IMG/VR virus record: IMGVR_UViG_3300042540_001399
Coordinates: 186,001-250,000 of that record
Length of the DNA: 64,000 bases
Reading direction: 5' to 3' (one strand)
The notes below the pieces were generated by a model. The model was not told the DNA's origin. It did not search any database and saw only the letters and a program-made list of their open reading frames with translations. Within the stretch, counting starts at the first letter, position 1; every line of letters starts with the position of its first letter. The position numbers and the translations under genes were made by a program. Positions 154 to 56,329 of the stretch are shown here, one piece after another.

Positions 154-1056
154 ATGAAAAAAGTATTTAAAAAAATTAGTAAGTTGTTTTCCAAAAACAA
201 AACGGTATCGGTAGATCCAAATACAATCGAAGGTGTGATTGTAAGCACACTTAACACAATTATTCAATCACCACAAGTACAGGACATGACATTCAAAGTG
301 TCTTCGTCTTGTGATAAAACATCTGTTTTAAACGACATTGAATTTTGTAACGAAGTTTATGTTCACGATAAATATACTTGGAGTGTTGTTGATGATGCTT
401 GTATTGATGCTTGTAATGTGGCATATGACATTTGTCATGGCGGATGCTCTGCGATAGATTGGACATGTAATAACTGTTGTACTAAAGAATGTAAACAAGG
501 AAGAGATGCTTGTAAAAGTCTTTGTGGTTATTTAGATATGACAGGAGGTTACGAGTTCAGACTTATGAACATAAAAGGTGTTGGTGGTATTCAAGTAACA
601 AATGTATATGATATGATACCAAAGTCTGATGTAGATAACGTATTTAGTATTACTATGGATTTAAATGTTCCAAAAGTTACCGCTCAGGCATATTATAAGA
701 TTTGGCAAGACCCTATTCCTGCTATGACTGGAACAATTCCTGTGGTTGCATCTAATGTTACAGGAAAAGCAACCGGAACTTTAATTATTTCTTGTGATGA
801 AAATAATCCTTCTGAATCAGGTTACTATTTACATATTGACACAATAGAAATTAACATACCTAAAAATGTATTTGATTCAAATATTTTATTAACTGCGGTG
901 TCTATCTTTGGAATGGACATTCAATACTTAACAGGTGGTATTGTTGATCTTGATCAAATGTTGTTAGATTTAGCGGACGGTGAGTTGGCAGATGTTGTTG
1001 TTGATGTCTTAAACGATATTTTGGATGATTATAAATTAATGGATGCAAATTGTTGA
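154..1056 (+). CDS. hypothetical protein with Cys-rich segment
   Basis: 300-aa ORF; dense Cys cluster (ACIDACN...CNNCC...CKSLC); ATATTTAT at 133-140. Confidence 0.75.
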   Translation: MKKVFKKISKLFSKNKTVSVDPNTIEGVIVSTLNTIIQSPQVQDMTFKVSSSCDKTSVLNDIEFCNEVYVHDKYTWSVVDDACIDACNVAYDICHGGCSAIDWTCNNCCTKECKQGRDACKSLCGYLDMTGGYEFRLMNIKGVGGIQVTNVYDMIPKSDVDNVFSITMDLNVPKVTAQAYYKIWQDPIPAMTGTIPVVASNVTGKATGTLIISCDENNPSESGYYLHIDTIEINIPKNVFDSNILLTAVSIFGMDIQYLTGGIVDLDQMLLDLADGELADVVVDVLNDILDDYKLMDANC

Positions 1057-32239: not shown

Positions 32240-32920
32240 ATGAAACACATCATTGTTACAAGATGTAAATTTGGAAATGACGAAAGTTTTCAAAAATATT
32301 TCCAAGTTATGAAAAAAACCTATATTCCATCTATAAATTCACAAACAAACAAGAACTTTTCAATTGCTCTTATAGTCAATCCCAAACACTATGATTTAAT
32401 TAGAAATGAAATAAACAAGGATATTGAAATTGTTAAATTTACAAGTCAAAATGAAGAATATAAAGATTTGGAAATAAGACAAAAAATAGATTTAATTCCA
32501 TTTTCAGATACAAAAAAAGATTACAGGGATTATGTAATTAAAAACAATATTACAATACAAACAAGACATGATTGTGATGATATAATGTTACCAAATTACG
32601 TCAATAAAATTCAAAAGCTTTATTCTGAAAATAAAAACAAACATGACGATTTTATTTTAAATTTTCACCCAACCAAACTTATTGTAGAATCAGGTAAAGA
32701 GTATACCCATAGTAGAGATTATAGTAGAGTATGTTCTATGTTTTCAACATTAGTACAAAAAAAAGTAAAACATGGGATCATGGATGTTATGCATGATCAT
32801 TTAGTAAGAATAACAAAAAATGTGATTTATATTCCTGAAACATTTGTTAAATTAGGAATACATGGTAATAACACAACATCTAAACTTAGGGAAACTGATA
32901 AATTAATAAGAAATTCATGA
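32240..32920 (+). CDS. putative glycosyltransferase (GT-A-like, rhamnosyltransferase-like)
   Basis: IPSINSQTNKNF and TRHDCDD motifs. Confidence 0.65.
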   Translation: MKHIIVTRCKFGNDESFQKYFQVMKKTYIPSINSQTNKNFSIALIVNPKHYDLIRNEINKDIEIVKFTSQNEEYKDLEIRQKIDLIPFSDTKKDYRDYVIKNNITIQTRHDCDDIMLPNYVNKIQKLYSENKNKHDDFILNFHPTKLIVESGKEYTHSRDYSRVCSMFSTLVQKKVKHGIMDVMHDHLVRITKNVIYIPETFVKLGIHGNNTTSKLRETDKLIRNS

Positions 32921-33669
32921 TCAAAAATTATACTTTAAAAGAAATTCAACAGGAAATAAAAAAAAACTACAAGTTTGGTGATACCATAGACATTTGTATT
33001 GTAACATTCAATAGATTGGAATACTTAAAAAAATGTGTTACAAGTATTATTGCATCCACATCAATTAAATTTCGAATTTTTGTAATTGATGATGGATCAA
33101 CTGACGGAACTAAGGAATGGTTACAGAAACAAAAAAAAAGAGGATTAATTTTTGATATAATACTAAATAAAAAAAATTTAGGAACGGCAACAAACTTTAA
33201 TCTTGTAATTGACAAGAGTGATAGTCCATTTTTTGTGATGTGTAATGACGATATGTATTTTCACAGATATTGGGACTTTGCAATTATGGATATTATAAAT
33301 AAATTTGACGATTGCGGTATAGTTTCATTTTATGATTACACAAGATATGGTCTTGACGAAGGTGTTTCAACTATTGACGATACAACAATTAAAGTTCCAA
33401 GAACTGGTTTGGGAGCTGCGGCGATTAACAGAGAACTATTCAATTTATCAGGAAAATTTATACTACCTGAAGGTGCAAAGATGGGATTTTTTGCGACCCC
33501 ATTTTGTTCAAGATGTTATAACACAAATATAAAAAGAAATACACATTATGCGACAGTACCCAATTATGTTACAAATATGGATGTGTCTTATTGTAAATTA
33601 AACGAGAATGACAATTTACAAGAATATGGGTTAATGAGGAAAAAAGAAAAACGAGGCTGGGGTAAATAA
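32917..33669 (+). CDS. glycosyltransferase family 2
   Basis: ICIVTFNR, VIDDGSTDGT, NLGTATNFN, CNDDMY. Confidence 0.9.
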   Translation: MIKNYTLKEIQQEIKKNYKFGDTIDICIVTFNRLEYLKKCVTSIIASTSIKFRIFVIDDGSTDGTKEWLQKQKKRGLIFDIILNKKNLGTATNFNLVIDKSDSPFFVMCNDDMYFHRYWDFAIMDIINKFDDCGIVSFYDYTRYGLDEGVSTIDDTTIKVPRTGLGAAAINRELFNLSGKFILPEGAKMGFFATPFCSRCYNTNIKRNTHYATVPNYVTNMDVSYCKLNENDNLQEYGLMRKKEKRGWGK

Positions 33670-33687
33670 ATTAAAAAAAAAATAATT

Positions 33688-34281
33688 ATGTTGTTAAACG
33701 AGCTGGCAAAAAAATATGGTACAGATAAAAAAATTCCAGATGGTATAAAATGTCAAAATGGTCTTTTAGGTCATGGATACACCGTACACTACGAAAAAAT
33801 ATTAAAAAACAGAAACATCAAAACTATGTTAGAAATAGGGGTTTCTTTTGGTGGATCTATTAAAATGTGGAATGAATACTTCAAAGGGAAATGTCACATT
33901 ACAGGAATTGATATTAACGAGAAAAGATTTAGAAAAAAAGACTTAGAAAATAAGAACATAAGGATCAAACTTGGTAGTCAAAACGATGTTAAATTTTTGA
34001 AGTCGTTATGTGATATTAAATATGATTTTATAGTTGATGATGGAAGTCATAAAAGTGGGGATCAAATAATATCCTTTAATAATTTATTTAACAATATGAA
34101 TAGTGGTGGTGTCTATATTATCGAAGATCTTCATGTTGCAAAAAAAACGGAACATATTTTTGAATCTATTAACACTAACGATGAATTTTATAAATTACAT
34201 TTAGATGAAACAGTAATAAAAAATATTAAATCTGTTGAATTTTATGAATCAAATAAATTGTGTGTTATTTATAGGAAATGA
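33688..34281 (+). CDS. class I SAM-dependent methyltransferase (sugar O-methyltransferase-like)
   Basis: MLEIGVSFGGS, GIDI, GSQND, IVDDGSH, GGVYIIEDL. Confidence 0.85.
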   Translation: MLLNELAKKYGTDKKIPDGIKCQNGLLGHGYTVHYEKILKNRNIKTMLEIGVSFGGSIKMWNEYFKGKCHITGIDINEKRFRKKDLENKNIRIKLGSQNDVKFLKSLCDIKYDFIVDDGSHKSGDQIISFNNLFNNMNSGGVYIIEDLHVAKKTEHIFESINTNDEFYKLHLDETVIKNIKSVEFYESNKLCVIYRK

Positions 34282-35339
34282 TATCAATAATAGTCACCGC
34301 ATATAATAATAAAAATTACATTCATGAATGTTTACAAAGCATTATAGAATCTTGTGGTGATGTAGATTTTGAAATTTTGTTGGGTATTGATAATTGTACA
34401 TCAACTTTGAAATCCGTGTTTCAAAAACACAAAAAATACAAAAATTTAAAAATACTCTTTTTCAAAAATAGAGTCGGAACTTACATTATAAGAAATAGTC
34501 TTGTGCCAATTTCAAAGTATGATAATATTTTATTTTTTGATTCTGATGACATCATGAAAAAAAATATGATTAATGATTTATTGTATAATATAAAAAAATA
34601 TGACTGTGTTAAACCTATGTTTTCTGGATTTAAAGATGGAGATGATATTACTTTACCCAAATTTAACACACAAAAAAACACATTTGGTGAAGGGGTATTT
34701 GCAATAAAGAAAAATGTTTTTAACGAAATGAACGGGTTTGAGCCATGGGTCTGTGCGGCAGATTCAGAGTTCAATTGGAGGTTGAGAATGAACAACAAAA
34801 CTTTTAAATACATAGAAAGGGTTTGTTTTTATTATAGAAGACATTCTACAAGTTTAACAACAAATCAAGAAACTGGAATGAGATCTAAATTGAGAATGAA
34901 ATATCATATTTTAACTAAAAACAAAAAAAATACTAAATCATTCTCACCATTGGATGAGATGGTTGTTTCGAAATTCATAGAAATAACTAACCATAATATT
35001 GATAATTTTTTAATAGACCAATTAAACCCTTCATTTGAAATACCTGAAGATAAAGGTCCCTTAGATGTTAACAATAATGAAAATGTAATTTCATTGATTT
35101 TTAATAAAACACCCAAGAAAGTTGTAGAACCAAATAAAAAACCAAAAGTTCAAATAGTTTCTAATAATCCAATAAATAATATATTAGTTAGAAAACCGAA
35201 AGTTGTTGATAAAGATAAAATCACTAAACAAAGACAAAATATTATTAACATAAAACAAAAAACTAATAGAGAAGTTTTTAACGAAATACACCCATCAAAA
35301 CCAAACCGAAGATTGGATCTTCCAAATATTAGGTTATAA
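34278..35339 (+). CDS. glycosyltransferase family 2 with basic C-terminal tail
   Basis: SIIVTAYN, GTYIIRN, FFDSDD, AADSEF. Confidence 0.85.
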   Translation: MISIIVTAYNNKNYIHECLQSIIESCGDVDFEILLGIDNCTSTLKSVFQKHKKYKNLKILFFKNRVGTYIIRNSLVPISKYDNILFFDSDDIMKKNMINDLLYNIKKYDCVKPMFSGFKDGDDITLPKFNTQKNTFGEGVFAIKKNVFNEMNGFEPWVCAADSEFNWRLRMNNKTFKYIERVCFYYRRHSTSLTTNQETGMRSKLRMKYHILTKNKKNTKSFSPLDEMVVSKFIEITNHNIDNFLIDQLNPSFEIPEDKGPLDVNNNENVISLIFNKTPKKVVEPNKKPKVQIVSNNPINNILVRKPKVVDKDKITKQRQNIINIKQKTNREVFNEIHPSKPNRRLDLPNIRL

Positions 35340-35871: not shown

Positions 35872-35908
35872 AAAACCCGAGACTTAAAAATCTCGGGTTT
35901 TTTGTTTT
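35872..35908 (+). terminator. attenuator terminator 1
   Basis: AAAACCCGAGA/TCTCGGGTTTT stem plus T tract ending 6 nt before tRNA-Thr. Confidence 0.9.
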
Positions 35909-35914
35909 ATATTA

Positions 35915-35986
35915 GCTCTGTAAGCATTGTTGGAGATGCGCCTGACTTGTAATCAGGAGAAATCAGTTCGATTCTGGTACGGAGCT
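35915..35986 (+). tRNA. tRNA-Thr(TGT)
   Basis: GCTCTGT/ACGGAGC; CCTGA-CTTGTAA-TCAGG; TTCGA. Confidence 0.9.
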
Positions 35987-35993
35987 CAAAAAG

Positions 35994-36002
35994 GTTCTTT
36001 GA
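35994..36002 (+). promoter_or_regulatory. boxA-like antitermination motif
   Basis: GTTCTTTGA; also at 39507, 39981 and 53468, all in RNA-gene leaders. Confidence 0.55.
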
Positions 36003-36019
36003 CATATTGGTCTTTATAG

Positions 36020-36090
36020 TGTTCCCTCGTCTAATGGCAGGACACGCGGTTTTGGTCCGTGGAATTGGGGTTCGAGTCCCTGGGGAACAA
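36020..36090 (+). tRNA. tRNA-Gln(TTG)
   Basis: TGTTCCC/GGGAACA; CGCGG-TTTTGGT-CCGTG. Confidence 0.92.
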
Positions 36091-36096
36091 CAATAA

Positions 36097-36180
36097 GGAA
36101 GAGTAATCACAACGGCTTGTGACTCCGTCTTGAAAACGGCAGGTACTGAAAGGTATGGGGATCGACACCTCACTCTTCCT
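36097..36180 (+). tRNA. tRNA-Ser(TGA)
   Basis: GGAAGAG/CTCTTCC; loop CTTGAAA; long variable arm; T loop ATCGACA. Confidence 0.88.
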
Positions 36181-36189
36181 CAACAATAA

Positions 36190-36262
36190 CTAGGTGTAGC
36201 TCAGATGGTAGAGCGGGTGGTTTGGGACCATCAGGCCGCAGGTTCGATCCCTGTCACTTAGA
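36190..36262 (+). tRNA. tRNA-Pro(TGG)
   Basis: CTAGGTG/CACTTAG; GGTGG-TTTGGGA-CCATC. Confidence 0.93.
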
Positions 36263-36266
36263 CAAC

Positions 36267-36342
36267 GTCTTCGTAGCTCAGTTGGTTTTAGAGCACCTCA
36301 CTTTTAATGAGGGGGTCACAGGTTCGAGCCCTGTCGGGGACA
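36267..36342 (+). tRNA. tRNA-Lys(TTT)
   Basis: GTCTTCG/CGGGGAC; CCTCA-CTTTTAA-TGAGG. Confidence 0.95.
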
Positions 36343-36384
36343 CAAAAATTTAGTAAAACTGAGCGATTTATACCAAAAAATGGT

Positions 36385-36392
36385 TATATTTG
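36385..36392 (+). promoter_or_regulatory. internal Bacteroidota -7 promoter element
   Basis: TATATTTG 17 nt before tRNA-Val. Confidence 0.6.
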
Positions 36393-36409
36393 CGTAAATA
36401 AACTAAAAA

Positions 36410-36483
36410 ACACTCTTAGCTCAGATGGTAGTAGCGGTTGTCTTACATACAACAGGTCACAGGTTCGATCCCTGTAGGGTGTA
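36410..36483 (+). tRNA. tRNA-Val(TAC)
   Basis: ACACTCT/AGGGTGT; GTTGT-CTTACAT-ACAAC. Confidence 0.92.
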
Positions 36484-36489
36484 CAATAA

Positions 36490-36575
36490 GGGAGAGTTGA
36501 GCAATTGGTTGGCTCAGCAGACTGTAAATCTGTCGTCGTAAGACCTTGGGGGTTCGAGTCCCTCCTCTCCCACCA
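36490..36575 (+). tRNA. tRNA-Tyr(GTA)
   Basis: GGGAGAG/CTCTCCC-A-CCA; loop CTGTAAA; variable arm. Confidence 0.95.
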
Positions 36576-36581
36576 CAAAAA

Positions 36582-36654
36582 GGACAAGTAGCTCAATTGG
36601 TAGAGCACCGCACTGTTAATGCGGGGGTTACAGGATCGTACCCTGTCTTGTCCG
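36582..36654 (+). tRNA. tRNA-Asn(GTT)
   Basis: GGACAAG/CTTGTCC; loop CTGTTAA; T loop ATCGTAC. Confidence 0.92.
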
Positions 36655-36660
36655 CAATAA

Positions 36661-36733
36661 GTTCACGTAGCTCAATTGGTAGAGCGCCGATCTGATACGT
36701 CGGAGGTAATGGGATCGTAACCCGTCGTGAACA
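36661..36733 (+). tRNA. tRNA-Ile(GAT)
   Basis: GTTCACG/CGTGAAC; loop CTGATAC; T loop ATCGTAA. Confidence 0.92.
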
Positions 36734-36737
36734 CTAC

Positions 36738-36821
36738 GGAAGATAAACCTTGATGGCGATAGGGTCCGCCTGCTAAGCGAGATGTACCTTTGGGTATTTG
36801 GTTCGATTCCAATGTCTTCCG
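36738..36821 (+). tRNA. tRNA-Ser(GCT)
   Basis: GGAAGA/TCTTCC; loop CTGCTAA; variable arm. Confidence 0.88.
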
Positions 36822-36827
36822 CAAAAC

Positions 36828-36897
36828 GCCGATAGGAAAGGTTTCCGATCCGGGCTCATATCCTGGATGTCATTGGGTTCGATACCCTTTATCGGTA
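36828..36897 (+). tRNA. atypical tRNA(CAT), probable elongator Met with shrunken D arm
   Basis: GCCGATA/TATCGGT; CCGGG-CTCATAT-CCTGG; D region only GGAA-AGGT-TTCC. Confidence 0.7.
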
Positions 36898-36903
36898 CTA
36901 CAT

Positions 36904-36977
36904 GGTGTATGTAGCTCAGTTGGCAGAGTGCTTGATTGTGGTTCAAGAGGTCATGGGTTCGACCCCCATCATACACA
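36904..36977 (+). tRNA. tRNA-His(GTG)
   Basis: encoded G-1, GTGTATG/CATACAC; loop TTGTGGT. Confidence 0.93.
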
Positions 36978-36978
36978 C

Positions 36979-37075
36979 AAATAGTTCACAACGGACAAGG
37001 CTTAGGCTCAAAGTGTGAGGTTATAATTCCTTATATTCCCTGAGGTGGGTGGCGAGTGGTTGACCAGAACTATTT
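36979..37075 (+). ncRNA. candidate structured RNA A
   Basis: 9-bp closing stem AAATAGTTC/GAACTATTT; no ORF. Confidence 0.45.
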
Positions 37076-37077
37076 AT

Positions 37078-37149
37078 ACCTTCGTAGCTTAATGGAAAAG
37101 CCTCAGAATACGAATCTGATGATTGGGAGTTCGACCCTCTCCGAAGGTA
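37078..37149 (+). tRNA. tRNA-Arg(ACG)
   Basis: ACCTTCG/CGAAGGT; TCAGA-ATACGAA-TCTGA. Confidence 0.92.
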
Positions 37150-37150
37150 C

Positions 37151-37283
37151 AAAAGATGATAGGAAGCGTAGAACAACGGACACGGAGGGGTGTTCGCAAG
37201 GGTACACACTAAGAATATATTTCTCTCTAAGGGTGTGTGAAGTCATACGATGGGATTCCTGATAAAGTTGTTCATCATCTTTT
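37151..37283 (+). ncRNA. candidate structured RNA B
   Basis: AAAAGATGAT/ATCATCTTTT and GAACAAC/GTTGTTC stems, internal hairpins. Confidence 0.55.
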
Positions 37284-37287
37284 ATTT

Positions 37288-37359
37288 ACCCCTTTCGTAT
37301 AATGGAAGTACAACACTCTTCTAAGGTGTCAGGTTGGAGTTCGAATCTCTGAGGGGGTA
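37288..37359 (+). tRNA. tRNA-Arg(TCT)
   Basis: ACCCCTT/AGGGGGT; ACACT-CTTCTAA-GGTGT. Confidence 0.9.
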
Positions 37360-37370
37360 CAACAAAATAC

Positions 37371-37441
37371 GCGTCTCTGGTGTAATGGTAGCATGATGGA
37401 TTCCAAACCCATCGGTCAGGGTTCGAGCCCTTGGGGACGCG
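37371..37441 (+). tRNA. tRNA-Trp(CCA)
   Basis: GCGTCTC/GGGACGC; ATGGA-TTCCAAA-CCCAT. Confidence 0.88.
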
Positions 37442-37449
37442 CTAATTAA

Positions 37450-37522
37450 GGACAGGTAGCTCAGTTGGTAGAGCGTTGGACTGAAGATCCAAGCGTCGGG
37501 GGTTCAATTCCCTCCCTGTCCA
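37450..37522 (+). tRNA. tRNA-Phe(GAA)
   Basis: GGACAGG/CCTGTCC; TTGGA-CTGAAGA-TCCAA. Confidence 0.95.
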
Positions 37523-37568
37523 CAAAATAAAATTTGTAATTTCTAACAAAAACCATTATCTTTGTATA

Positions 37569-38063
37569 ATGAAACATTTACCATACGAAGCTACAGGAAA
37601 GGCAATTAAGGGATATTCTGAATCAGAAACCGCTAGACGTGAAACAAATGACTGTGTGGTTAGAGCATTTGCATCGTCATTTGAAGTGTCTTATGATTAT
37701 GCCCATAAGTTTGTTGCGGATGAATTTGGTAGAAGACCAAGAAAAGGAACTTACGGAACTGTATCAAAACTTGTCAAAATGGCCGACAGTTTATTTAAAG
37801 TTAATGGTAAAAAAGTTTGTCCTGTTGGTATTAGACACAACGATAATATGTTAAGATCTTTGATGTATGATGTTAAAGTGAAAGGGGAAATTAAAAAAAG
37901 AAATATGACTGTTGGGACATTTGTTAAACAAAATCCAAAAGGAACTTTTTTTGTTTTGGTTAGACGACACGCATTTACAATCAAAGATGGTGTTGTAATT
38001 GGTAATTGGGATGACGCTATAAAAACAAAAAGACCAATGAGATGTGCCTTCAGAATTAAATAA
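37569..38063 (+). CDS. phage protein with NDCVVRA...HAF.I.DG motif (possible Cys-His-Asp peptidase fold)
   Basis: TATCTTTG -7 element at 37557-37564; Cys, His and Asp motif residues. Confidence 0.65.
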   Translation: MKHLPYEATGKAIKGYSESETARRETNDCVVRAFASSFEVSYDYAHKFVADEFGRRPRKGTYGTVSKLVKMADSLFKVNGKKVCPVGIRHNDNMLRSLMYDVKVKGEIKKRNMTVGTFVKQNPKGTFFVLVRRHAFTIKDGVVIGNWDDAIKTKRPMRCAFRIK

Positions 38064-38075
38064 AAAAATAAAAAA

Positions 38076-38531
38076 ATGAACCGTGTATTTAGAACGGTGG
38101 AAGGGGTTTCTATACCTGATATTGTAAAACATACTATTGATATTCTTAAAGAATGTCCATATGCTGAAATACACATTGGTACAGACTCACAAAACCATAG
38201 AAGATCAACCGTGTATGTTACGGCAATAGCATATAGATATGGTAACCGTGGGGTTCACTACATTTATCATAAACAAAAAATTAAAAAAATTCGTGATAAG
38301 TGGACAAGATTATGGAATGAAGCTGATTATTCGATCGAAGTTGCAAATTGGTTGACAAATAAAATAAAGGTTCAAGTTGAAATAGACCTTGATTACAATT
38401 ATCAAGAAAAGTACTTCAGTTCGAAGTTAGTTGGTCCAGCGGTTGGGTGGGTACAATCGTTAGGTTATAAGGCAAATATAAAACCAAATAATCAAATTGC
38501 AACAAGAGCGGCAGACCACCACTGTCGTTAA
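38076..38531 (+). CDS. RNase H-like YkuK family protein
   Basis: IGTDSQ, RLWNEA, DLDYN, IKP...AADH. Confidence 0.8.
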   Translation: MNRVFRTVEGVSIPDIVKHTIDILKECPYAEIHIGTDSQNHRRSTVYVTAIAYRYGNRGVHYIYHKQKIKKIRDKWTRLWNEADYSIEVANWLTNKIKVQVEIDLDYNYQEKYFSSKLVGPAVGWVQSLGYKANIKPNNQIATRAADHHCR

Positions 38532-38533
38532 TT

Positions 38534-38605
38534 GGTCGGGTGTCTGATGGGTAAAGTCTCGGTCTGCAAAACCGTAGTATGTGGGTTCGAATCCCACCCC
38601 GACCT
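38534..38605 (+). tRNA. tRNA-Cys(GCA)
   Basis: GGTCGGG/CCCGACC, U73; loop CTGCAAA. Confidence 0.9.
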
Positions 38606-38614
38606 CAACAAAAT

Positions 38615-38688
38615 GCCCCTATGGCGGAATTGGTATACGCGTGTGACTTAGGATCACAATCTTGCAGGTTCGAGTCCTGCTGGGGGTA
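38615..38688 (+). tRNA. tRNA-Leu(TAG), short variable loop
   Basis: GCCCCTA/TGGGGGT; TGTGA-CTTAGGA-TCACA; variable region ATCTT. Confidence 0.9.
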
Positions 38689-38727
38689 CAAATATTTTTA
38701 TTAGTATATTTATACTAAAAGATTATT

Positions 38728-39318
38728 ATGAAAAAGATTATAAGACTTACTGAATCAGATCTCGCTCGTATAGTTGGACGAGTTATTAAAGAAGAATATG
38801 ATGAAGATGATGAAGTGGAGGTTACACCTGAAATGATTATCAAAATGCTTATGGATAGTGCCGAATCAACCCCACAAGAAAATTATGATGACCTATATGA
38901 TTGGATGCAAGATGTATTTTCACCGGTTGAAAGTGAACTTGAGGATATGGGGTATGATATTGACGACCTTCGTATGACATATGATGATGTTATAATGAGT
39001 TTATGGGATGATAATGATGAAGATGATGAGGAATCATTATATGAATCAGATCTCGCTCGTATCGTTAAACAAGTTATTAGTGAATCTAAAAAGAATCTTA
39101 GTAAATCTGAAATATTGAAGATGTCAAAAGATGAGCTAAAAGATGTTTATGGTGAATTGGAAGTAAAAGGTGAGTATCACGGAAACAAAGGAACATTCCA
39201 CCACTTCAAAAGAACTGCAATCGGAGATATTGTCTGTAGTTTTAGAACTGATGACTCAACACCATCAGGATTGAAAAGAAATACTCAAGGAATTAAAGTC
39301 AAAAATTTAGATTTTTAA
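38728..39318 (+). CDS. protein with two LxESDL motifs
   Basis: MKKIIRLTESDLARIV and internal LYESDLARIV; ATATTTAT 38706-38713. Confidence 0.8.
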   Translation: MKKIIRLTESDLARIVGRVIKEEYDEDDEVEVTPEMIIKMLMDSAESTPQENYDDLYDWMQDVFSPVESELEDMGYDIDDLRMTYDDVIMSLWDDNDEDDEESLYESDLARIVKQVISESKKNLSKSEILKMSKDELKDVYGELEVKGEYHGNKGTFHHFKRTAIGDIVCSFRTDDSTPSGLKRNTQGIKVKNLDF

Positions 39319-39324
39319 TAAAAC

Positions 39325-39356
39325 TTGACACTTTTGAAATTATTAGTATATTTATA
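39325..39356 (+). promoter_or_regulatory. promoter upstream of leader 2
   Basis: TTGACA 39325-39330 and TATATTTATA 39347-39356. Confidence 0.6.
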
Positions 39357-39377
39357 AAACAAATTAAAAAACCGCAA

Positions 39378-39446
39378 ATGAAAAATTTACACATATTATT
39401 GATAGGGGGCGATTTAGCTGAAGCAACTTTCAAGAAGAGGGTGTAA
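39378..39446 (+). CDS. attenuator leader peptide 2 (22 aa)
   Basis: MKNLHILLIGGDLAEATFKKRV; codons match tRNA array 2. Confidence 0.85.
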   Translation: MKNLHILLIGGDLAEATFKKRV

Positions 39447-39469
39447 TATTTTATACATTTAATATTTAG

Positions 39470-39504
39470 AACCCCTCTTCCAAAAAAGAGGGGTTTTTTG
39501 TTTT
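39470..39504 (+). terminator. attenuator terminator 2
   Basis: AACCCCTCTT/AAGAGGGGTT plus T tract; boxA-like motif and tRNA-Leu follow. Confidence 0.9.
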
Positions 39505-39530
39505 AGGTTCTTTGAAATAATGGTAATAAT

Positions 39531-39615
39531 GGTTCGGTGGTGGAATTGGCAATACACGACAGGTTTAAGCCCTGTTTCCCATTGAGGATTGTGGGTTCGA
39601 GTCCCACCCGGACTA
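39531..39615 (+). tRNA. tRNA-Leu(TAA)
   Basis: GGTTCGG/CCGGACT; ACAGG-TTTAAGC-CCTGT; variable arm. Confidence 0.93.
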
Positions 39616-39620
39616 CAACA

Positions 39621-39716
39621 AAAACACATAAACTTTGGTTCCCACACAGCGGTGAGACGGGGTAAGTTATATACAATTTCTCGGGGCTGGAAGTAGAAAG
39701 CCAAAGAATGTGTTTT
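39621..39716 (+). ncRNA. candidate rod-like structured RNA C (6S-like?)
   Basis: AAAACACAT/ATGTGTTTT, CTTTGGTT/AGCCAAAG, CAGC/GCTG, GAGA/TCTC nested stems. Confidence 0.55.
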
Positions 39717-39777
39717 TTTAAAAAAAACTTTACAAAGTATTTGGTAGAACAAAATAAAAAATTTAATTTTGTAATAA

Positions 39778-39894
39778 ATGAAGACAATTGAAGTTACATA
39801 TCAAGAAATCAAAATGGCAACAAGGCCAAATGTGTATAAAAATAAAAAAAAATACACAAGAAAAGAAAAACATAAAAAAGATTTGGTAGATTAA
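39778..39894 (+). CDS. small basic protein, ArfA-like motif (38 aa)
   Basis: MKTIEVTYQEIKMATRPNVYKNKKKYTRKEKHKKDLVD; TAATTTTG at 39764-39771. Confidence 0.6.
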   Translation: MKTIEVTYQEIKMATRPNVYKNKKKYTRKEKHKKDLVD

Positions 39895-39905
39895 AAAAAA
39901 TCTTA

Positions 39906-39989
39906 TATCTTTGTTAAACAAATGACGGGGGTAGGAAAATTAGTGTTGTGGATTCCTACTCCCGTGTAAAAGGGAAGAAAGTTCTTTGA
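39906..39989 (+). promoter_or_regulatory. -7 promoter, 13-bp hairpin and boxA-like motif (rrn-leader-like)
   Basis: TATCTTTG 39906-39913; ACGGGGGTAGGAA/TTCCTACTCCCGT 39925-39965; GTTCTTTGA 39981-39989. Confidence 0.6.
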
Positions 39990-40000
39990 TTTAAAATATT

Positions 40001-40081
40001 GTGGTTGTAAGCAATGGGAAACTCGTTAAGTACATCAACCAGTTGGCTCAAGATGGTGAAACGAGAGTGTGAGTCAACTAC
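40001..40081 (+). ncRNA. candidate structured RNA D
   Basis: GTGGTTG/CAACTAC, CTCGTT/AACGAG, CATC/GATG nested stems. Confidence 0.45.
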
Positions 40082-40103
40082 TAAATCACAAAAAAAATGA
40101 AAT

Positions 40104-40228
40104 AGGCAAGTGGCGGAATTTATGGCAGACGCTTAGGTTGATTCCCCGTAAGAAGTCACCGAGATATAGCTGGGGATGTCTCTTGAAAAGGGAACTATAT
40201 CGTACAGGTTCGAATCCTGTTTTGCCTA
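40104..40228 (+). ncRNA. tRNA-like RNA with expanded anticodon/variable region and pseudoknot
   Basis: AGGCAAG/TTTGCCT acceptor, Leu-type D arm, ACAGG-TTCGAAT-CCTGT T arm, ~70-nt insert. Confidence 0.75.
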
Positions 40229-40233
40229 CACAT

Positions 40234-40306
40234 CGCGGGATGTGGAAGATGGTTATCCGCTCGGTCTCATAAGCCGAGATCGCCGGTTCGAGTCCGGCTC
40301 CCGCAA
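40234..40306 (+). tRNA. initiator tRNA-fMet(CAT)
   Basis: C1:A72 mismatch, CGCGGGA/TCCCGCA; loop CTCATAA. Confidence 0.9.
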
Positions 40307-40311
40307 CTTAA

Positions 40312-40371
40312 AGGGTGGATAGGTGGAAGGGCCTTTCCTGAAAGACGGTTTACTAGGCCCGTGTCCACCCT
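40312..40371 (+). ncRNA. candidate small structured RNA E
   Basis: AGGGTGGATA/TGTCCACCCT and GGGCCT/AGGCCC stems. Confidence 0.45.
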
Positions 40372-40382
40372 ACTGAATTTAT

Positions 40383-40463
40383 GCTGACGTACCAGTGGAT
40401 GCTTATATCATCTATACCTGTAGCGGTAAGTTGAAAACGTTGGTTCGAATCCAACCGTCAGTA
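40383..40463 (+). tRNA. D-armless tRNA-like RNA with TAT anticodon-like loop
   Basis: GCTGACG/CGTCAGT; GGATG-CTTATAT-CATCT; GTTGG-TTCGAAT-CCAAC; 7-nt D replacement. Confidence 0.6.
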
Positions 40464-40466
40464 CGG

Positions 40467-40610
40467 GAGTGTATGCAGTAGAGATCTGCTTATGATGGTA
40501 GGGACAAACACTTTAAAAAAGGGTCCCAAAGAGATAAGCCGTTTAGTAGTTTTGGTCGATAAAAACTAACGGATTTTATAGTAATGGTTCACCGATCGAA
40601 ACCAATACTC
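40467..40610 (+). ncRNA. candidate multibranched RNA F
   Basis: GAGTGT/ATACTC closing stem with four internal hairpins. Confidence 0.5.
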
Positions 40611-40681
40611 ATGATGTCAGAAAGGTTGATCACCTAATTCATGTAAACACCGTGACAACACCCCAAAGTTGTCACACTTTT

Positions 40682-40757
40682 GCGGGAGTAGCTCAATTGG
40701 TAGAGTTCCAGCCTTCCAAGCTGGCTGTTGAGGGTTCGAATCCCTTCTCCCGCTCCA
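40682..40757 (+). tRNA. tRNA-Gly(TCC)
   Basis: GCGGGAG/CTCCCGC-T-CCA; loop CTTCCAA. Confidence 0.95.
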
Positions 40758-40761
40758 AGTT

Positions 40762-40834
40762 GGGCCTGATGCCGACGGCAGGTCGAGTGGTTTGCAACCA
40801 CATCGTTTGGGTTCGATTCCCACAGTGTCCACCA
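40762..40834 (+). tRNA. atypical tRNA-Ala(TGC)
   Basis: G3:U70, A73, encoded CCA; GTGG-TTTGCAA-CCAC; bulged acceptor stem. Confidence 0.75.
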
Positions 40835-41007
40835 AATAAACAAAAAAACAAAGTAGTGATGAAGGAAGTTTTGTCAGGAACTTTAAAATCAAGAAAAGTT
40901 AATTTTGTTCAGATTGAAAATAACAGTGATTTTTTAAGTTCTTTAAGAAAAAAAATAAAAAAAAGAATAAGTAATTTAAAAAAAACAATTAAATTTGTAA
41001 AAAAAAG

Positions 41008-41087
41008 AAGATGAGTTTCCCTACATCCCGGATTAGTGAGAAACTTAAAGAGGGACAAAAGTGGTACACAAGTCCACGACTCATCTT
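41008..41087 (+). ncRNA. candidate structured RNA G
   Basis: AAGATGAGT/ACTCATCTT closing stem, two hairpins; TAAATTTG at 40990-40997. Confidence 0.45.
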
Positions 41088-41092
41088 AATTT

Positions 41093-41164
41093 GGTCGGTT
41101 CATCTAGGGGTCAGGATACAAGGTTTTCATCCTTGTCACACGGGTTCGAATCCCGTACCGACTA
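41093..41164 (+). tRNA. tRNA-Glu(TTC)
   Basis: GGTCGGT/ACCGACT; CAAGG-TTTTCAT-CCTTG. Confidence 0.93.
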
Positions 41165-41189
41165 CAAACCTGTCAAGGTAGTACAGGAA

Positions 41190-41305
41190 GGTCAGGAGTG
41201 TAATGAGGCACGGTGCCAAGTCCTAAAGACACCACGGTCCAAGAGCAATTTGGACGCGAGAAGTTATAAGGTTGCTCATTGTAGGTTCGAATCCTACCCT
41301 GACTT
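41190..41305 (+). ncRNA. tRNA-like RNA: acceptor plus T arm with novel 84-nt body
   Basis: GGTCAGG/CCTGACT; GTAGG-TTCGAAT-CCTAC; AATGAG/CTCATT and GTCCAA/TTGGAC stems. Confidence 0.7.
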
Positions 41306-41307
41306 CA

Positions 41308-41455
41308 CGGTTCGGATCATCACCGAATAGTATGCCCAATACGATGAGAAATGAGGTGATACCTCATATGGGACTTCTGATAGATAAAGGATCTATTCGG
41401 TTTGACTAACCGCGGGAAATATCAAAGAGGGTTGAAGAACTACGTACCCTCGAGT
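41308..41455 (+). ncRNA. candidate multi-hairpin RNA H
   Basis: CCGAATAG/CTATTCGG, ATGAGG/CCTCAT, CGGTT/AACCG, GAGGG/CCCTC. Confidence 0.4.
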
Positions 41456-41461
41456 CCAATT

Positions 41462-41536
41462 GGTCCATTGGTGTAGTGGCTAACATTCATCCCTGTCACG
41501 GATGAGCCGCGAGTTCGATTCTCGCATGGACCGCCA
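41462..41536 (+). tRNA. tRNA-Asp(GTC)
   Basis: GGTCCAT/ATGGACC-G-CCA; CATCC-CTGTCAC-GGATG. Confidence 0.95.
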
Positions 41537-41558
41537 AACTTATTAAAAATTAACCATT

Positions 41559-41828
41559 ATGAAAACTTTTCAAGACTTGGAATTTATAAAAATAAATGAT
41601 GCACCGTTTATGGTTGGTAAAAAATCCCGTATGCATTTTGATAATGGGTTCGGTGTATCTGTTGTATCACACTCTTATTCATATGGGGGTCGTGATGGTC
41701 TTTATGAAGTCGCGGTCCTTGACTCTGACGACAATCTTACCTACGATACTCCAATAACCAATGATGTAATGGGTTACTTAACTGAACAAGATGTTACTAA
41801 TGTCATGAAACAAGTTCAAGAGCTATAA
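41559..41828 (+). CDS. hypothetical phage protein
   Basis: 89 aa; FDNGFGVSVV...GGRDGLYEVAVL. Confidence 0.75.
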   Translation: MKTFQDLEFIKINDAPFMVGKKSRMHFDNGFGVSVVSHSYSYGGRDGLYEVAVLDSDDNLTYDTPITNDVMGYLTEQDVTNVMKQVQEL

Positions 41829-41913
41829 AAGATGACAGTTTTTTTATTCATAACATTTTTAACGACACTTTTTTTGTTGAGAAAAAAAAGAAAGTTTTAA
41901 GTAGATAAAAAAA

Positions 41914-41987
41914 GGTCTCTTAGCTCATTAGGTTAGAGCAACTGACTCATAATCAGTAGGTGGTTGGTTCGATCCCAACAGGGACCA
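41914..41987 (+). tRNA. tRNA(CAT), Ile2 (lysidine)-type
   Basis: GGTCTCT/AGGGACC; GACTCATAATC anticodon arm as in bacterial tRNA-Ile2 (recalled, not searched). Confidence 0.8.
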
Positions 41988-42032
41988 CAAAAGTATTGAA
42001 TATTTTAAAACAGAAATTATTATTTATAATAT

Positions 42033-42106
42033 GCACCCGTAGCTCAGCTGGATAGAGCAACTGCCTTCTAAGCAGTAGGTCAATGGTTCGAATCCATTCG
42101 GGTGTA
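42033..42106 (+). tRNA. tRNA-Arg(TCT), second copy
   Basis: GCACCCG/CGGGTGT; ACTGC-CTTCTAA-GCAGT. Confidence 0.95.
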
Positions 42107-42178
42107 CTTTTTTTTTATTTTTTTTTTGGAAATCAAAAAGTTTCCTGTATCTTTGTTGAAATAAATAACGATAAAGAT

Positions 42179-53479: not shown

Positions 53480-54376
53480 ATAGATTATCCGTTCAGGAAA
53501 AGTTTTGTCAGATTCTATGACAAGTAATTGGAATGAAATTTCCATCTTTGAATGATAAAGATATTGGGCCGTGTATAGTCCATAAAATAAACTACGAAAG
53601 TAGGATAAAGTGAACCCTTAAGTGTGTTGGGTTTGCGGCTTCTTCGGGAGCTTGAGTACACAAGCGGGATACCATTTTGGCTTTAGTATTGAGGGCAACG
53701 CTGTAAAGAATAAGGCAAAATGATTTGGCGATGTGGGTCGTCTGATTGAGGTGGGAACACCAATAGGAATAACCCGTAGGAATATTGCAAGACTCAAAGT
53801 CATCCAACTTTAATATTGCGTTTTCCAATATAATAGGTTACTTAAAACCAAGTGGAAGGACCACAAGGTAAGATGTAGAACGAGTGGTGTCGCTAACATC
53901 CTTCACTCAGGTTTACCAAAACCCGGTGATGAAGTAGTCTAAAAATATGGAGGTAGGGATATCTCACGGAGTAGTTGAGTATCGACTCGTTCAAAAGATG
54001 GGTTGGCTCGGTTGGCGGACCACTACTTCGACAATCCACGACACAAAACTTATGACTATTGAATTAAGTCCATTAATTAATACATTAAGGAAAAGTGTCC
54101 GTCAGGTTTGGATGAAAGGTGACTACATAGTAATGAGCCGTTCATTGCACACAGAGATCCCAAGTCGATGTGTAATTATCCGAAAAACCTTTAGTCCCGC
54201 AAGGACGAGTTGGGAAGGCATTCTCGAAAAGAGTAGATTAGGATGAGAGTAATTCAAACCTTAAGGAGTGGTAAACCTAAAAGACCGTCACTGAGAAATA
54301 CTTCTCAAAAGGAAGTGGATAAGAGTAGAAACAATAATGACTCTAAAGGTTCTCACACAAACGTGTAATCTCAGCG
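53480..54376 (+). ncRNA. large ornate ncRNA, GOLLD-like
   Basis: ~0.9 kb, visibly GC-richer than flanks, many GNRA/UUCG-type hairpins, CTGAGA/TCTCAG terminal stem, own promoter and terminator. Confidence 0.7.
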
Positions 54377-54410
54377 TTTTATTTTAATGGAGCCACCGGT
54401 AAAGAACATT

Positions 54411-55938: not shown

Positions 55939-56329
55939 TGGTGGAGGCGGAGGGACTCGAACCCTCGTCCATAATATCCTGTCAGATAAGGACTACATGT
56001 TTAGGTTGATATTTTCTAATATCCCAAAATAGTTGATTTGTTCTTCACCATCGTAAATCAACAACCAATGGTCCCGAATCGGATTTAGAGAGCCATCCGG
56101 TGTGCTCTATCAAACTACGACTTCTGTTGCTAGGTTATATGTCTGCCGACCCCCCGTTTCCGTAAACTTCTTAAGCTACAGTAACTTCAGAACCTCTTAC
56201 TAATCCAAGAGTTTCCATTTTGTTTAGCACATTGCCAGTTGTTTTCTAAGTCAGTTTTTAAAGAGATTAACTCAGTCCCTACATGCCCTTATTCTTCAGC
56301 CAATACCTGTCAAATCCAAAAACGCCCCC
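55939..56329 (-). ncRNA. ssrA: tmRNA
   Basis: 5' GGGGGCG...GGATTTGACAGG; 3' GGACGAGGGTTCGAGTCCCTCCGCCTCCACCA; G3:U70; tag ORF 56236-56171. Confidence 0.95.

Follow-up and report, generated by a model that had tools for sequence, protein, structure and literature searches.

Small RNAs within a phage tRNA array

We find that the two structured spacers flanking tRNA-Arg(ACG) in the tRNA array of a jumbo phage are real genes for two different small RNAs, RNA A and RNA B, each of which belongs to a conserved family that is absent from Rfam 15 and unannotated in GenBank phage records. The 13-nt motif that the two RNAs share at this locus is best read as a chance convergence in one lineage. The window, that is, the whole 64-kb stretch of DNA that we analysed, matches IMG/VR contigs of about 290 kb and so comes from a jumbo phage; it carries a long array in which ARAGORN finds 22 tRNAs, all on the + strand. 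A terminator-like hairpin and a promoter-like site precede the first tRNA, and no terminator-like site lies between 35915 and 37700, so that RNA A and RNA B sit inside one untranslated transcription unit. The positions of all features are given in Table 1.

A first-pass annotation of this sequence described two RNAs, each with a 9-10 bp closing stem and a common 13-nt motif near its 5' end, and everything that it described is present. The motif occurs as ACAACGGACAAGG in RNA A and as ACAACGGACACGG in RNA B, and these are the only two exact matches to ACAACGGACAMGG in the window on either strand. RNA A is closed by 9 bp between AAAUAGUUC and GAACUAUUU, and RNA B is closed by 10 bp between AAAAGAUGAU and AUCAUCUUUU; both stems appear in the minimum-free-energy folds (z about -2 for each). 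The interpretation placed on these observations is only partly supported: both are genuine structured RNAs placed as cassettes between tRNAs, as had been proposed, but the proposal that they are two members of one ncRNA family, or binding sites for one protein, is not supported.

Table 1. Positions of the RNA elements and of neighbouring features in the window, and of two features in related contigs.
Feature	Position	Strand	Description and support
Terminator-like hairpin	35872-35901		Precedes the first tRNA of the array
Promoter-like site	35884-35913		Precedes the first tRNA of the array
tRNA array	35915-42107	+	22 tRNAs (ARAGORN)
tRNA-Ser(UGA)-like	36096-36183	+	Cloverleaf with a long variable arm
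Spacer	36344-36409	+	66 nt, A+T-rich, TTTATACC...TATATTTGCG
tRNA-Ser(GCU)-like	36737-36821	+	Class II; weak Rfam tRNA-Sec hit, 31 bits
CAU-anticodon tRNA-like	36828-36897	+	Short D arm
tRNA-His	36905-36978	+	ARAGORN
RNA A	36979-37075	+	Family A; model R1 81.7 bits, E 2e-20; no Rfam match at E up to 10
RNA A, P1 5' strand	36979-36987	+	Pairs with 37067-37075; starts directly after the tRNA-His discriminator base; all 7 modelled pairs change on both sides across the family
13-nt motif in RNA A	36988-37000		ACAACGGACAAGG
RNA A, P2 5' strand	36989-36992	+	CAAC, pairs with GUUG at 37059-37062
RNA A, 5' half of internal loop	36993-37006	+	GGACAAGGCU-UA-GG; invariant or nearly so except for the two middle bases
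RNA A, hairpin P3	37007-37044	+	Variable; CUCA/UGAG base with its own inner hairpin; base pairs covary
RNA A, 3' half of internal loop	37045-37058	+	Invariant; GUGGG-UG-GCG-A-GUG
RNA A, 3' end	37059-37075	+	P2 3' strand GUUG, linker ACCA (37063-37066), P1 3' strand (37067-37075)
tRNA-Arg(ACG)	37078-37150	+	Separates the two RNAs; ARAGORN, and Rfam tRNA model at 59.2 bits
RNA B	37151-37283	+	Family B; no Rfam match
RNA B, P1	37151-37160 / 37274-37283		Closing stem, 10 bp
RNA B, P2 5' strand	37172-37177	+	AACAAC, pairs with GUUGUU at 37267-37272; carries the first bases of the 13-mer; all 6 pairs change on both sides; 97.5% of cells paired
13-nt motif in RNA B	37173-37185		ACAACGGACACGG
RNA B, hairpin P3	37178-37195	+	GGACAC-GGAGGG-GUGUUC; carries the rest of the 13-mer; all 4 modelled pairs covary; loop GGAGRG can pair with CUCUCU at 37223-37228 (95% of cells paired)
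RNA B, P4 block	37200-37242	+	Invariant; GGGUACACAC ... GGUGUGUGAAG
RNA B, conserved single strand	37254-37266	+	GAUUCCUGAUAAA, before the P2 3' strand; invariant or nearly invariant columns
tRNA-Arg(UCU)	37288-37360	+	ARAGORN
164-aa protein gene	37569-38063		Conserved, unknown function
RNase H-like protein gene	38076-38531	+	PF04308, E 6e-26; between tRNA genes, next to the 164-aa protein gene
Glycosyltransferase block	32240-35339	+	Glycosyltransferase, rhamnosyl-transferase-like and methyltransferase genes just upstream of the array
GOLLD RNA	53967-54377	+	Full length; Rfam RF02032, 320 bits
tmRNA	55939-56329	-	Rfam RF00023, 114 bits
Pnkp-RNA A module	L035:10860-14709		Marine T4-like contig
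tRNA-like 3' half	L127: about 240-300	+	Ends in CCGCCA; ARAGORN label tRNA-SeC(tca)

RNA A defines a widespread family with a nearly invariant internal loop

To determine if RNA A is conserved, we examined loci retrieved through the neighbouring gene for the 164-aa protein (retrieved loci and contigs are designated here by L numbers), and found 24 related loci that share RNA A but not always RNA B, in which the two ends of RNA A are conserved while its middle is replaced. Exact 14-mers from the two ends co-occur in IMG/VR at spacings of 39-212 nt, giving 32 distinct sequences; scans with a single 14-mer give many chance hits (we estimate that hundreds are expected), and only hits carrying both halves were counted. 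In total we found 153 distinct sequences. The family has a P1 stem of free sequence (5-15 bp), one unpaired base, a P2 stem of 4 bp (sometimes 3), the loop strand GGACAAGGCU-NN-GG, a hairpin P3 of 10-185 nt, the loop strand GRUGGG-NN-GCG-N-GUG, the P2 3' strand, a short linker, and the P1 3' strand, for an overall length of roughly 70-250 nt. The linker is ACCA in about 60% of members and is replaced by other short linkers elsewhere.

The helices of this architecture are supported by covariation. On 19 diverse sequences, 95.4% of cells are paired and 11 of 15 pairs change on both sides; none of 500 shuffles reaches the observed covariation score, and shifted registers fall to 28-44% pairing. 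Similarly, across the 153 distinct sequences P2 appears in nine Watson-Crick combinations, CAAC/GUUG, CAGC/GCUG, AGAC/GUCU, UGAC/GUCA, AGGC/GCCU, CGAC/GUCG, UAAC/GUUA, UAGC/GCUA and a 3-bp CAC/GUG, while the loop strands, of 14 nt and 14-15 nt, hardly change, although it should be considered that GGACAAGGCU comprises the search anchor plus a free last base. A hairpin inserted between GGCU and GG in L079, and an optional UGA...ACAA module in P3, show where the fold tolerates additions. We found no covariation among the variable positions inside the loop that would reveal its fold, whereas a true P3 pair gives a mutual information (MI) of 1.49; a two-tier G-quadruplex formed from the four GG tracts is an idea that we did not test. 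A covariance model, R1, built from 19 sequences that include RNA A itself, finds exactly one copy in the window, and it scores independent members at 41-88 bits and one truncated copy (L015) at 21 bits.

Family A is distributed broadly. It is present but unannotated in 103 records of isolated Streptomyces phages (Stanwilliamsviridae, for example the BE-cluster phage StarPlatinum, MH576965, where the RNA lies at about 94,921-94,997) and in Arthrobacter phage Atuin, and it occurs in IMG/VR contigs and in more than 120 metagenome contigs, a minimum count, which to judge from the contig names include rumen, gut, soil, lake, marine, sludge and hypersaline samples. By contrast, it occurs in only 16 of 185,579 representative bacterial genomes, but these span Bacteroidota, Actinobacteria, Alpha-, Gamma- and Deltaproteobacteria, Firmicutes and Armatimonadota. 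A sequence from a Bacteroidales MAG is about 90% identical over 59 nt to the Streptomyces-phage copies. Rfam 15 was searched at gathering and at permissive thresholds with the window, with a 316-nt stretch, with a minimal family A member and with a typical family B member, and returned only chance-level hits for these RNAs. Literature searches with the exact sequences found only unrelated primer hits; however, a published catalogue of 8,495 unnamed candidate RNAs from IMG/VR (PMC10690425), with whose individual entries the motifs were not compared, may already list one or both of them. Neither RNA A nor RNA B is called as a tRNA by ARAGORN or matches the Rfam tRNA model (RF00005) at E up to 10.

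RNA B belongs to a second, unrelated family

RNA B scores only 5.9 bits (E about 5; 4.8 with filters off) against R1, and homologues of RNA B are not found by R1 at E below 0.1. An nhmmer search found homologues of RNA B next to family A RNAs in L060 and L055, and a pattern derived from the most conserved hairpin of RNA B then recovered 48 IMG/VR stretches, of which 36 are distinct. These sequences are all in metagenomic phage tRNA arrays, and most lie between tRNAs, often between tRNA-Arg(ACG) and tRNA-Arg(UCU). Family B is absent from Rfam and from 50,697 isolate phage records.

RNA B aligns over its full length with 26 homologues, and the alignment of 27 sequences supports a multi-helix RNA of roughly 135-170 nt with two pseudoknot pairings. 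The elements are P1, a 3-bp GCG/CGC pairing that crosses P2, P2 itself (6 bp, every pair covarying), a covarying P3 whose GGAGAG loop can pair with CUCUCU in the distal part of P4, an invariant GUACACAC/GUGUGUG helix, a variable P5, and the conserved GAUUCCUGAUAAA. Overall, 93% of cells are paired and 22 pairs change on both sides, and 0 of 500 shuffles match. The invariance of the P4 block (GGGUACACAC ... GGUGUGUGAAG) is partly by construction, since this block was the search anchor. The consensus architecture differs from that of family A.

The shared motif is not conserved in family B

If the motif, written in the first-pass annotation as ACAACGGACA(A/C)GG, marked a common family or a common binding site, it should recur in related phage tRNA arrays, and a search of such arrays had been put forward at the outset as one way to examine the idea. 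In the family B alignment the 13-mer occupies columns 24-36, corresponding to the P2 5' strand, two linker bases, the P3 5' strand and the first two loop bases. Only 3 of the 27 sequences, the window sequence, L358 and L060, which form one lineage, carry it, while the other 24 differ at 3-10 of the 13 positions. L055 carries both RNAs side by side; its family A RNA keeps ACAACGGACAAGG, but its family B RNA reads AUGACAGACGUGG, with compensating changes on the partner strands. In family A the CAAC part of the motif is itself a covarying helix strand, and only C-GGACAAGG belongs to the invariant core.

The single-family reading does have some support, in that the motif lies near the 5' end of both RNAs and in both its CAAC pairs with a GUUG near the 3' end. 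Moreover, a 12-of-13 match between RNA A and dinucleotide-shuffled RNA B arises in only 0.7% of 3000 shuffles (p about 0.007), which is unusual for one pair, but this pair was picked after the fact among several spacers. Given the covariance-model score and the absence of the motif from most family B sequences, we consider a common family or binding site very unlikely. A further partial echo of the motif, CACAACGG, occurs in the D arm of the tRNA-Ser(UGA)-like gene within the array.

Placement between tRNAs and inferred release

Both RNAs sit flush between tRNAs that lack an encoded CCA. In array-embedded family A copies, P1 begins 0-1 nt after the upstream tRNA in 22 cases, while the gap to the downstream tRNA is 0-14 nt, and RNA B shows the same flush 5' placement in the window. 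What the sequence comparisons show is that the window holds two separate small-RNA genes of different families, that P1, P2 and P3 of RNA A vary freely while keeping their pairing around an almost invariant loop, that RNA B has its own helices and invariant blocks, and that the 13-mer has no common role in the two. From this layout we infer, rather than show, that both RNAs are co-transcribed with the tRNAs and would be freed when the 3' end of the upstream CCA-less tRNA is cut (RNase Z/BN type) and RNase P cuts the 5' end of the downstream tRNA; the closing stem would keep each RNA folded and protected. This agrees with the cassette idea of the first-pass annotation, although no expression, end-mapping or binding data were available for either RNA. 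Many family A copies have no tRNA nearby, and some sit just upstream of unrelated genes or before terminators, so that release by tRNA processing cannot be the whole story. Taken together, we consider the explanation by two separate cassette-borne families to be likely.

Possible functions of RNA A

The function of both RNAs is unknown, and the evidence for RNA A is indirect. The near-invariance of about 30 loop nucleotides in phages that appear to infect very different bacterial phyla argues for a self-contained activity or a universal partner. We infer, with low confidence, that the invariant loop is the working surface, which would either bind a component common to all bacteria, most plausibly something in tRNA or RNA-end maturation and repair, or be a catalytic core. 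Among 186 distinct contexts the commonest protein neighbour of RNA A is a Pnkp-type HAD 3'-phosphatase, which occurs in 19 contexts at 40-88% identity, often 10-39 nt upstream. In L209 the RNA lies between that phosphatase and a kinase-like ATPase, in L232 it follows a CCA-adding enzyme, and in L035 it lies 118 nt upstream of a DUF2828/DUF7788 gene (PHROG 850 'RNA-binding protein', annotated 'Ro-like' in mycobacteriophages). These neighbours point towards RNA-end healing and tRNA maturation. However, most of the Pnkp cases come from one broad marine T4-like lineage. A conserved module of Pnkp-type phosphatase, small ORF, RNA A and a roughly 720-aa protein with a weak vWA (CobT_C) match occurs in marine T4-like contigs (L035 and its relatives L127, L233, L045 and L450), and L035 adds to it the Ro-like gene, inserted after the RNA. 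A search for an RNA ligase or RtcB beside this module in L450 found none, and the neighbourhood is a generic T4-like region. Other copies of RNA A sit beside ERF or YqaJ recombination genes, or unrelated genes, sometimes just before a terminator or a gene start.

Of the more specific possibilities, a new class of self-cleaving ribozyme is unlikely but remains possible. In this view RNA A would cut at or near its own 5' edge and so make the 3' end of the upstream CCA-less tRNA, as theta (HDV-like) ribozymes are proposed to do (PMC10879173), and the resulting 2',3'-cyclic phosphate would be healed by a Pnkp-type phosphatase before CCA addition. An invariant loop between freely varying helices fits a catalytic core, near-identity across phages linked to unrelated host phyla argues for a self-contained function, P1 starts flush with the upstream tRNA while the 3' gap is looser, and the neighbours include a 3'-phosphatase and a CCA-adding enzyme. 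On the other hand, no Rfam ribozyme model matches at E up to 10, and permissive scans of short stretches gave no match to hammerhead, twister, twister-sister, pistol or hatchet. By inspection neither the hammerhead nor the HDV topology fits: the helices of RNA A, with P1 and P2 formed by the two ends and one distal hairpin, cannot be mapped onto the nested double pseudoknot (P1, P1.1, P2, P3, P4, with cleavage 5' of P1), since the strand that would be P1 pairs with the 3' terminus and not with an internal segment, and the CUGAUAA/GAAG strings in RNA B are, as we read the sequence, in the wrong order for a hammerhead. No conserved nucleotide marks a cleavage site at the P1 edge, many copies have no upstream tRNA, and the flush placement of RNA B may indicate that this is a general feature of cassettes; cleavage was not assayed.

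A Y-RNA-like partnership with phage Ro-like (DUF2828/vWA) proteins or with other RNA-repair proteins, in which RNA A would act as a scaffold or gate, seems very doubtful. As in Y RNAs (PMC4201824), the ends form a long stem with a conserved purine-rich element near the 5' side, and Pnkp genes are neighbours, but a Ro-like gene is adjacent in L035 only, its relatives L127, L233 and L045 lacking the gene at that place, and of 699 phage records with a DUF2828 homologue none of the ten commonest genera is Streptomyces, where RNA A is found. The Ro-binding motif GNCGAAN0-1G (or GGUCCGA) is absent, the nearest string being GGACAAGG, and there is no YrlA or Y_RNA match and no tRNA-like D/T module in minimal members. 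It is similarly improbable that RNA A is an aptamer for a universal small molecule, acting as a sponge or, in copies outside arrays, as a cis-regulatory switch through P1. The large invariant internal loop resembles hairpin-type aptamers, and in some copies (L327, L232, L050) P1 is followed directly by a U-tract and a gene start, but the downstream genes are heterogeneous, and most copies with tRNA context are flanked by tRNAs on both sides, which leaves no expression platform. We had also noticed ACAAGG, GUACACAC and GUGAAG strings that might reflect mimicry of, or antisense pairing to, rRNA, but local alignment of the conserved blocks to an E. coli rrn operon was no better than shuffles (all p at or above 0.125). 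A broader reading, tentative but not excluded, is that RNA A is a previously unrecognised functional RNA class with a self-contained activity, either a new self-cleaving ribozyme that makes tRNA 3' ends or a binder of a universal ligand or universal machinery, which would explain why the loop stays the same in phages associated with Actinobacteria, Bacteroidota, Proteobacteria and Firmicutes; RNA B would then be a second undescribed class housed in the same tRNA arrays.

Comparison with known phage RNAs

The closest analogues are the species 1 and species 2 stable RNAs of phage T4 (rnaC and rnaD), which are non-tRNA RNAs of about 120-140 nt encoded inside the T4 tRNA cluster, directly after tRNA-Arg on the tRNA strand (NC_000866 70908-71171). 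These RNAs are released with the tRNAs and their function is unknown. The resemblance is one of arrangement and not of family membership, and there is no sequence or structure relation: R1 finds nothing above 9.7 bits in the T4 region, the sequences look unrelated by eye, and T4 rnaC ends in a tRNA-like T arm, which neither RNA A nor RNA B has. In the T4 record these RNAs are annotated only for that phage, whereas family A spans phages linked to several host phyla. Theta ribozymes next to phage tRNAs are likewise compact structured RNAs that could shape tRNA ends, but no HDV-family Rfam model matches RNA A. Bacterial and phage Y RNAs (YrlA, Yrn1) are small RNAs whose ends form a stem with a conserved protein-binding element; they are phage-encoded in some cases and are linked to RNA quality control, but RNA A lacks the features noted above. 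The large ornate RNAs GOLLD and ROOL are phage-borne structured RNAs of unknown function that reportedly tend to lie near tRNA genes (PMC12286853), and the window carries a GOLLD RNA, but at over 400 nt this is far larger than RNA A or RNA B, and there is no model match between them.

Phage tRNA arrays are usually annotated as tRNAs plus spacers, and here two of the spacers are conserved RNA genes. Family A, which is unusually conserved and widespread, is the more striking, and since it is present in over 100 records of cultured Streptomyces phages it can be tested genetically straight away. If RNA A proves catalytic or binds a universal target, it would add a new RNA class, and it would give a handle on the 50-year-old question of what the non-tRNA RNAs in phage tRNA clusters do; even if its function stays unknown, models of both families would improve phage annotation.

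Other features of the array and its surroundings

The array contains tRNA-like genes that ARAGORN misses. The tRNA-Ser(UGA)-like gene, which is also missed by the Rfam tRNA model, has an unusual 6-bp D stem with a 4-nt loop and is 99% conserved in related phages (L004-L013), and the tRNA-Ser(GCU)-like and CAU-anticodon sequences are both conserved in related loci. The A+T-rich spacer inside the array may be an internal promoter, although the consensus scan did not call it. The 164-aa protein encoded next to the RNase H-like gene tracks the array in related phages. The GOLLD RNA lies about 12 kb downstream of the last tRNA, and the phage-encoded tmRNA, which ARAGORN did not list, lies on the strand opposite to the tRNAs. 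In L127, the tRNA-like 3' half lies 29 nt upstream of the closing stem P1 of the family A RNA.
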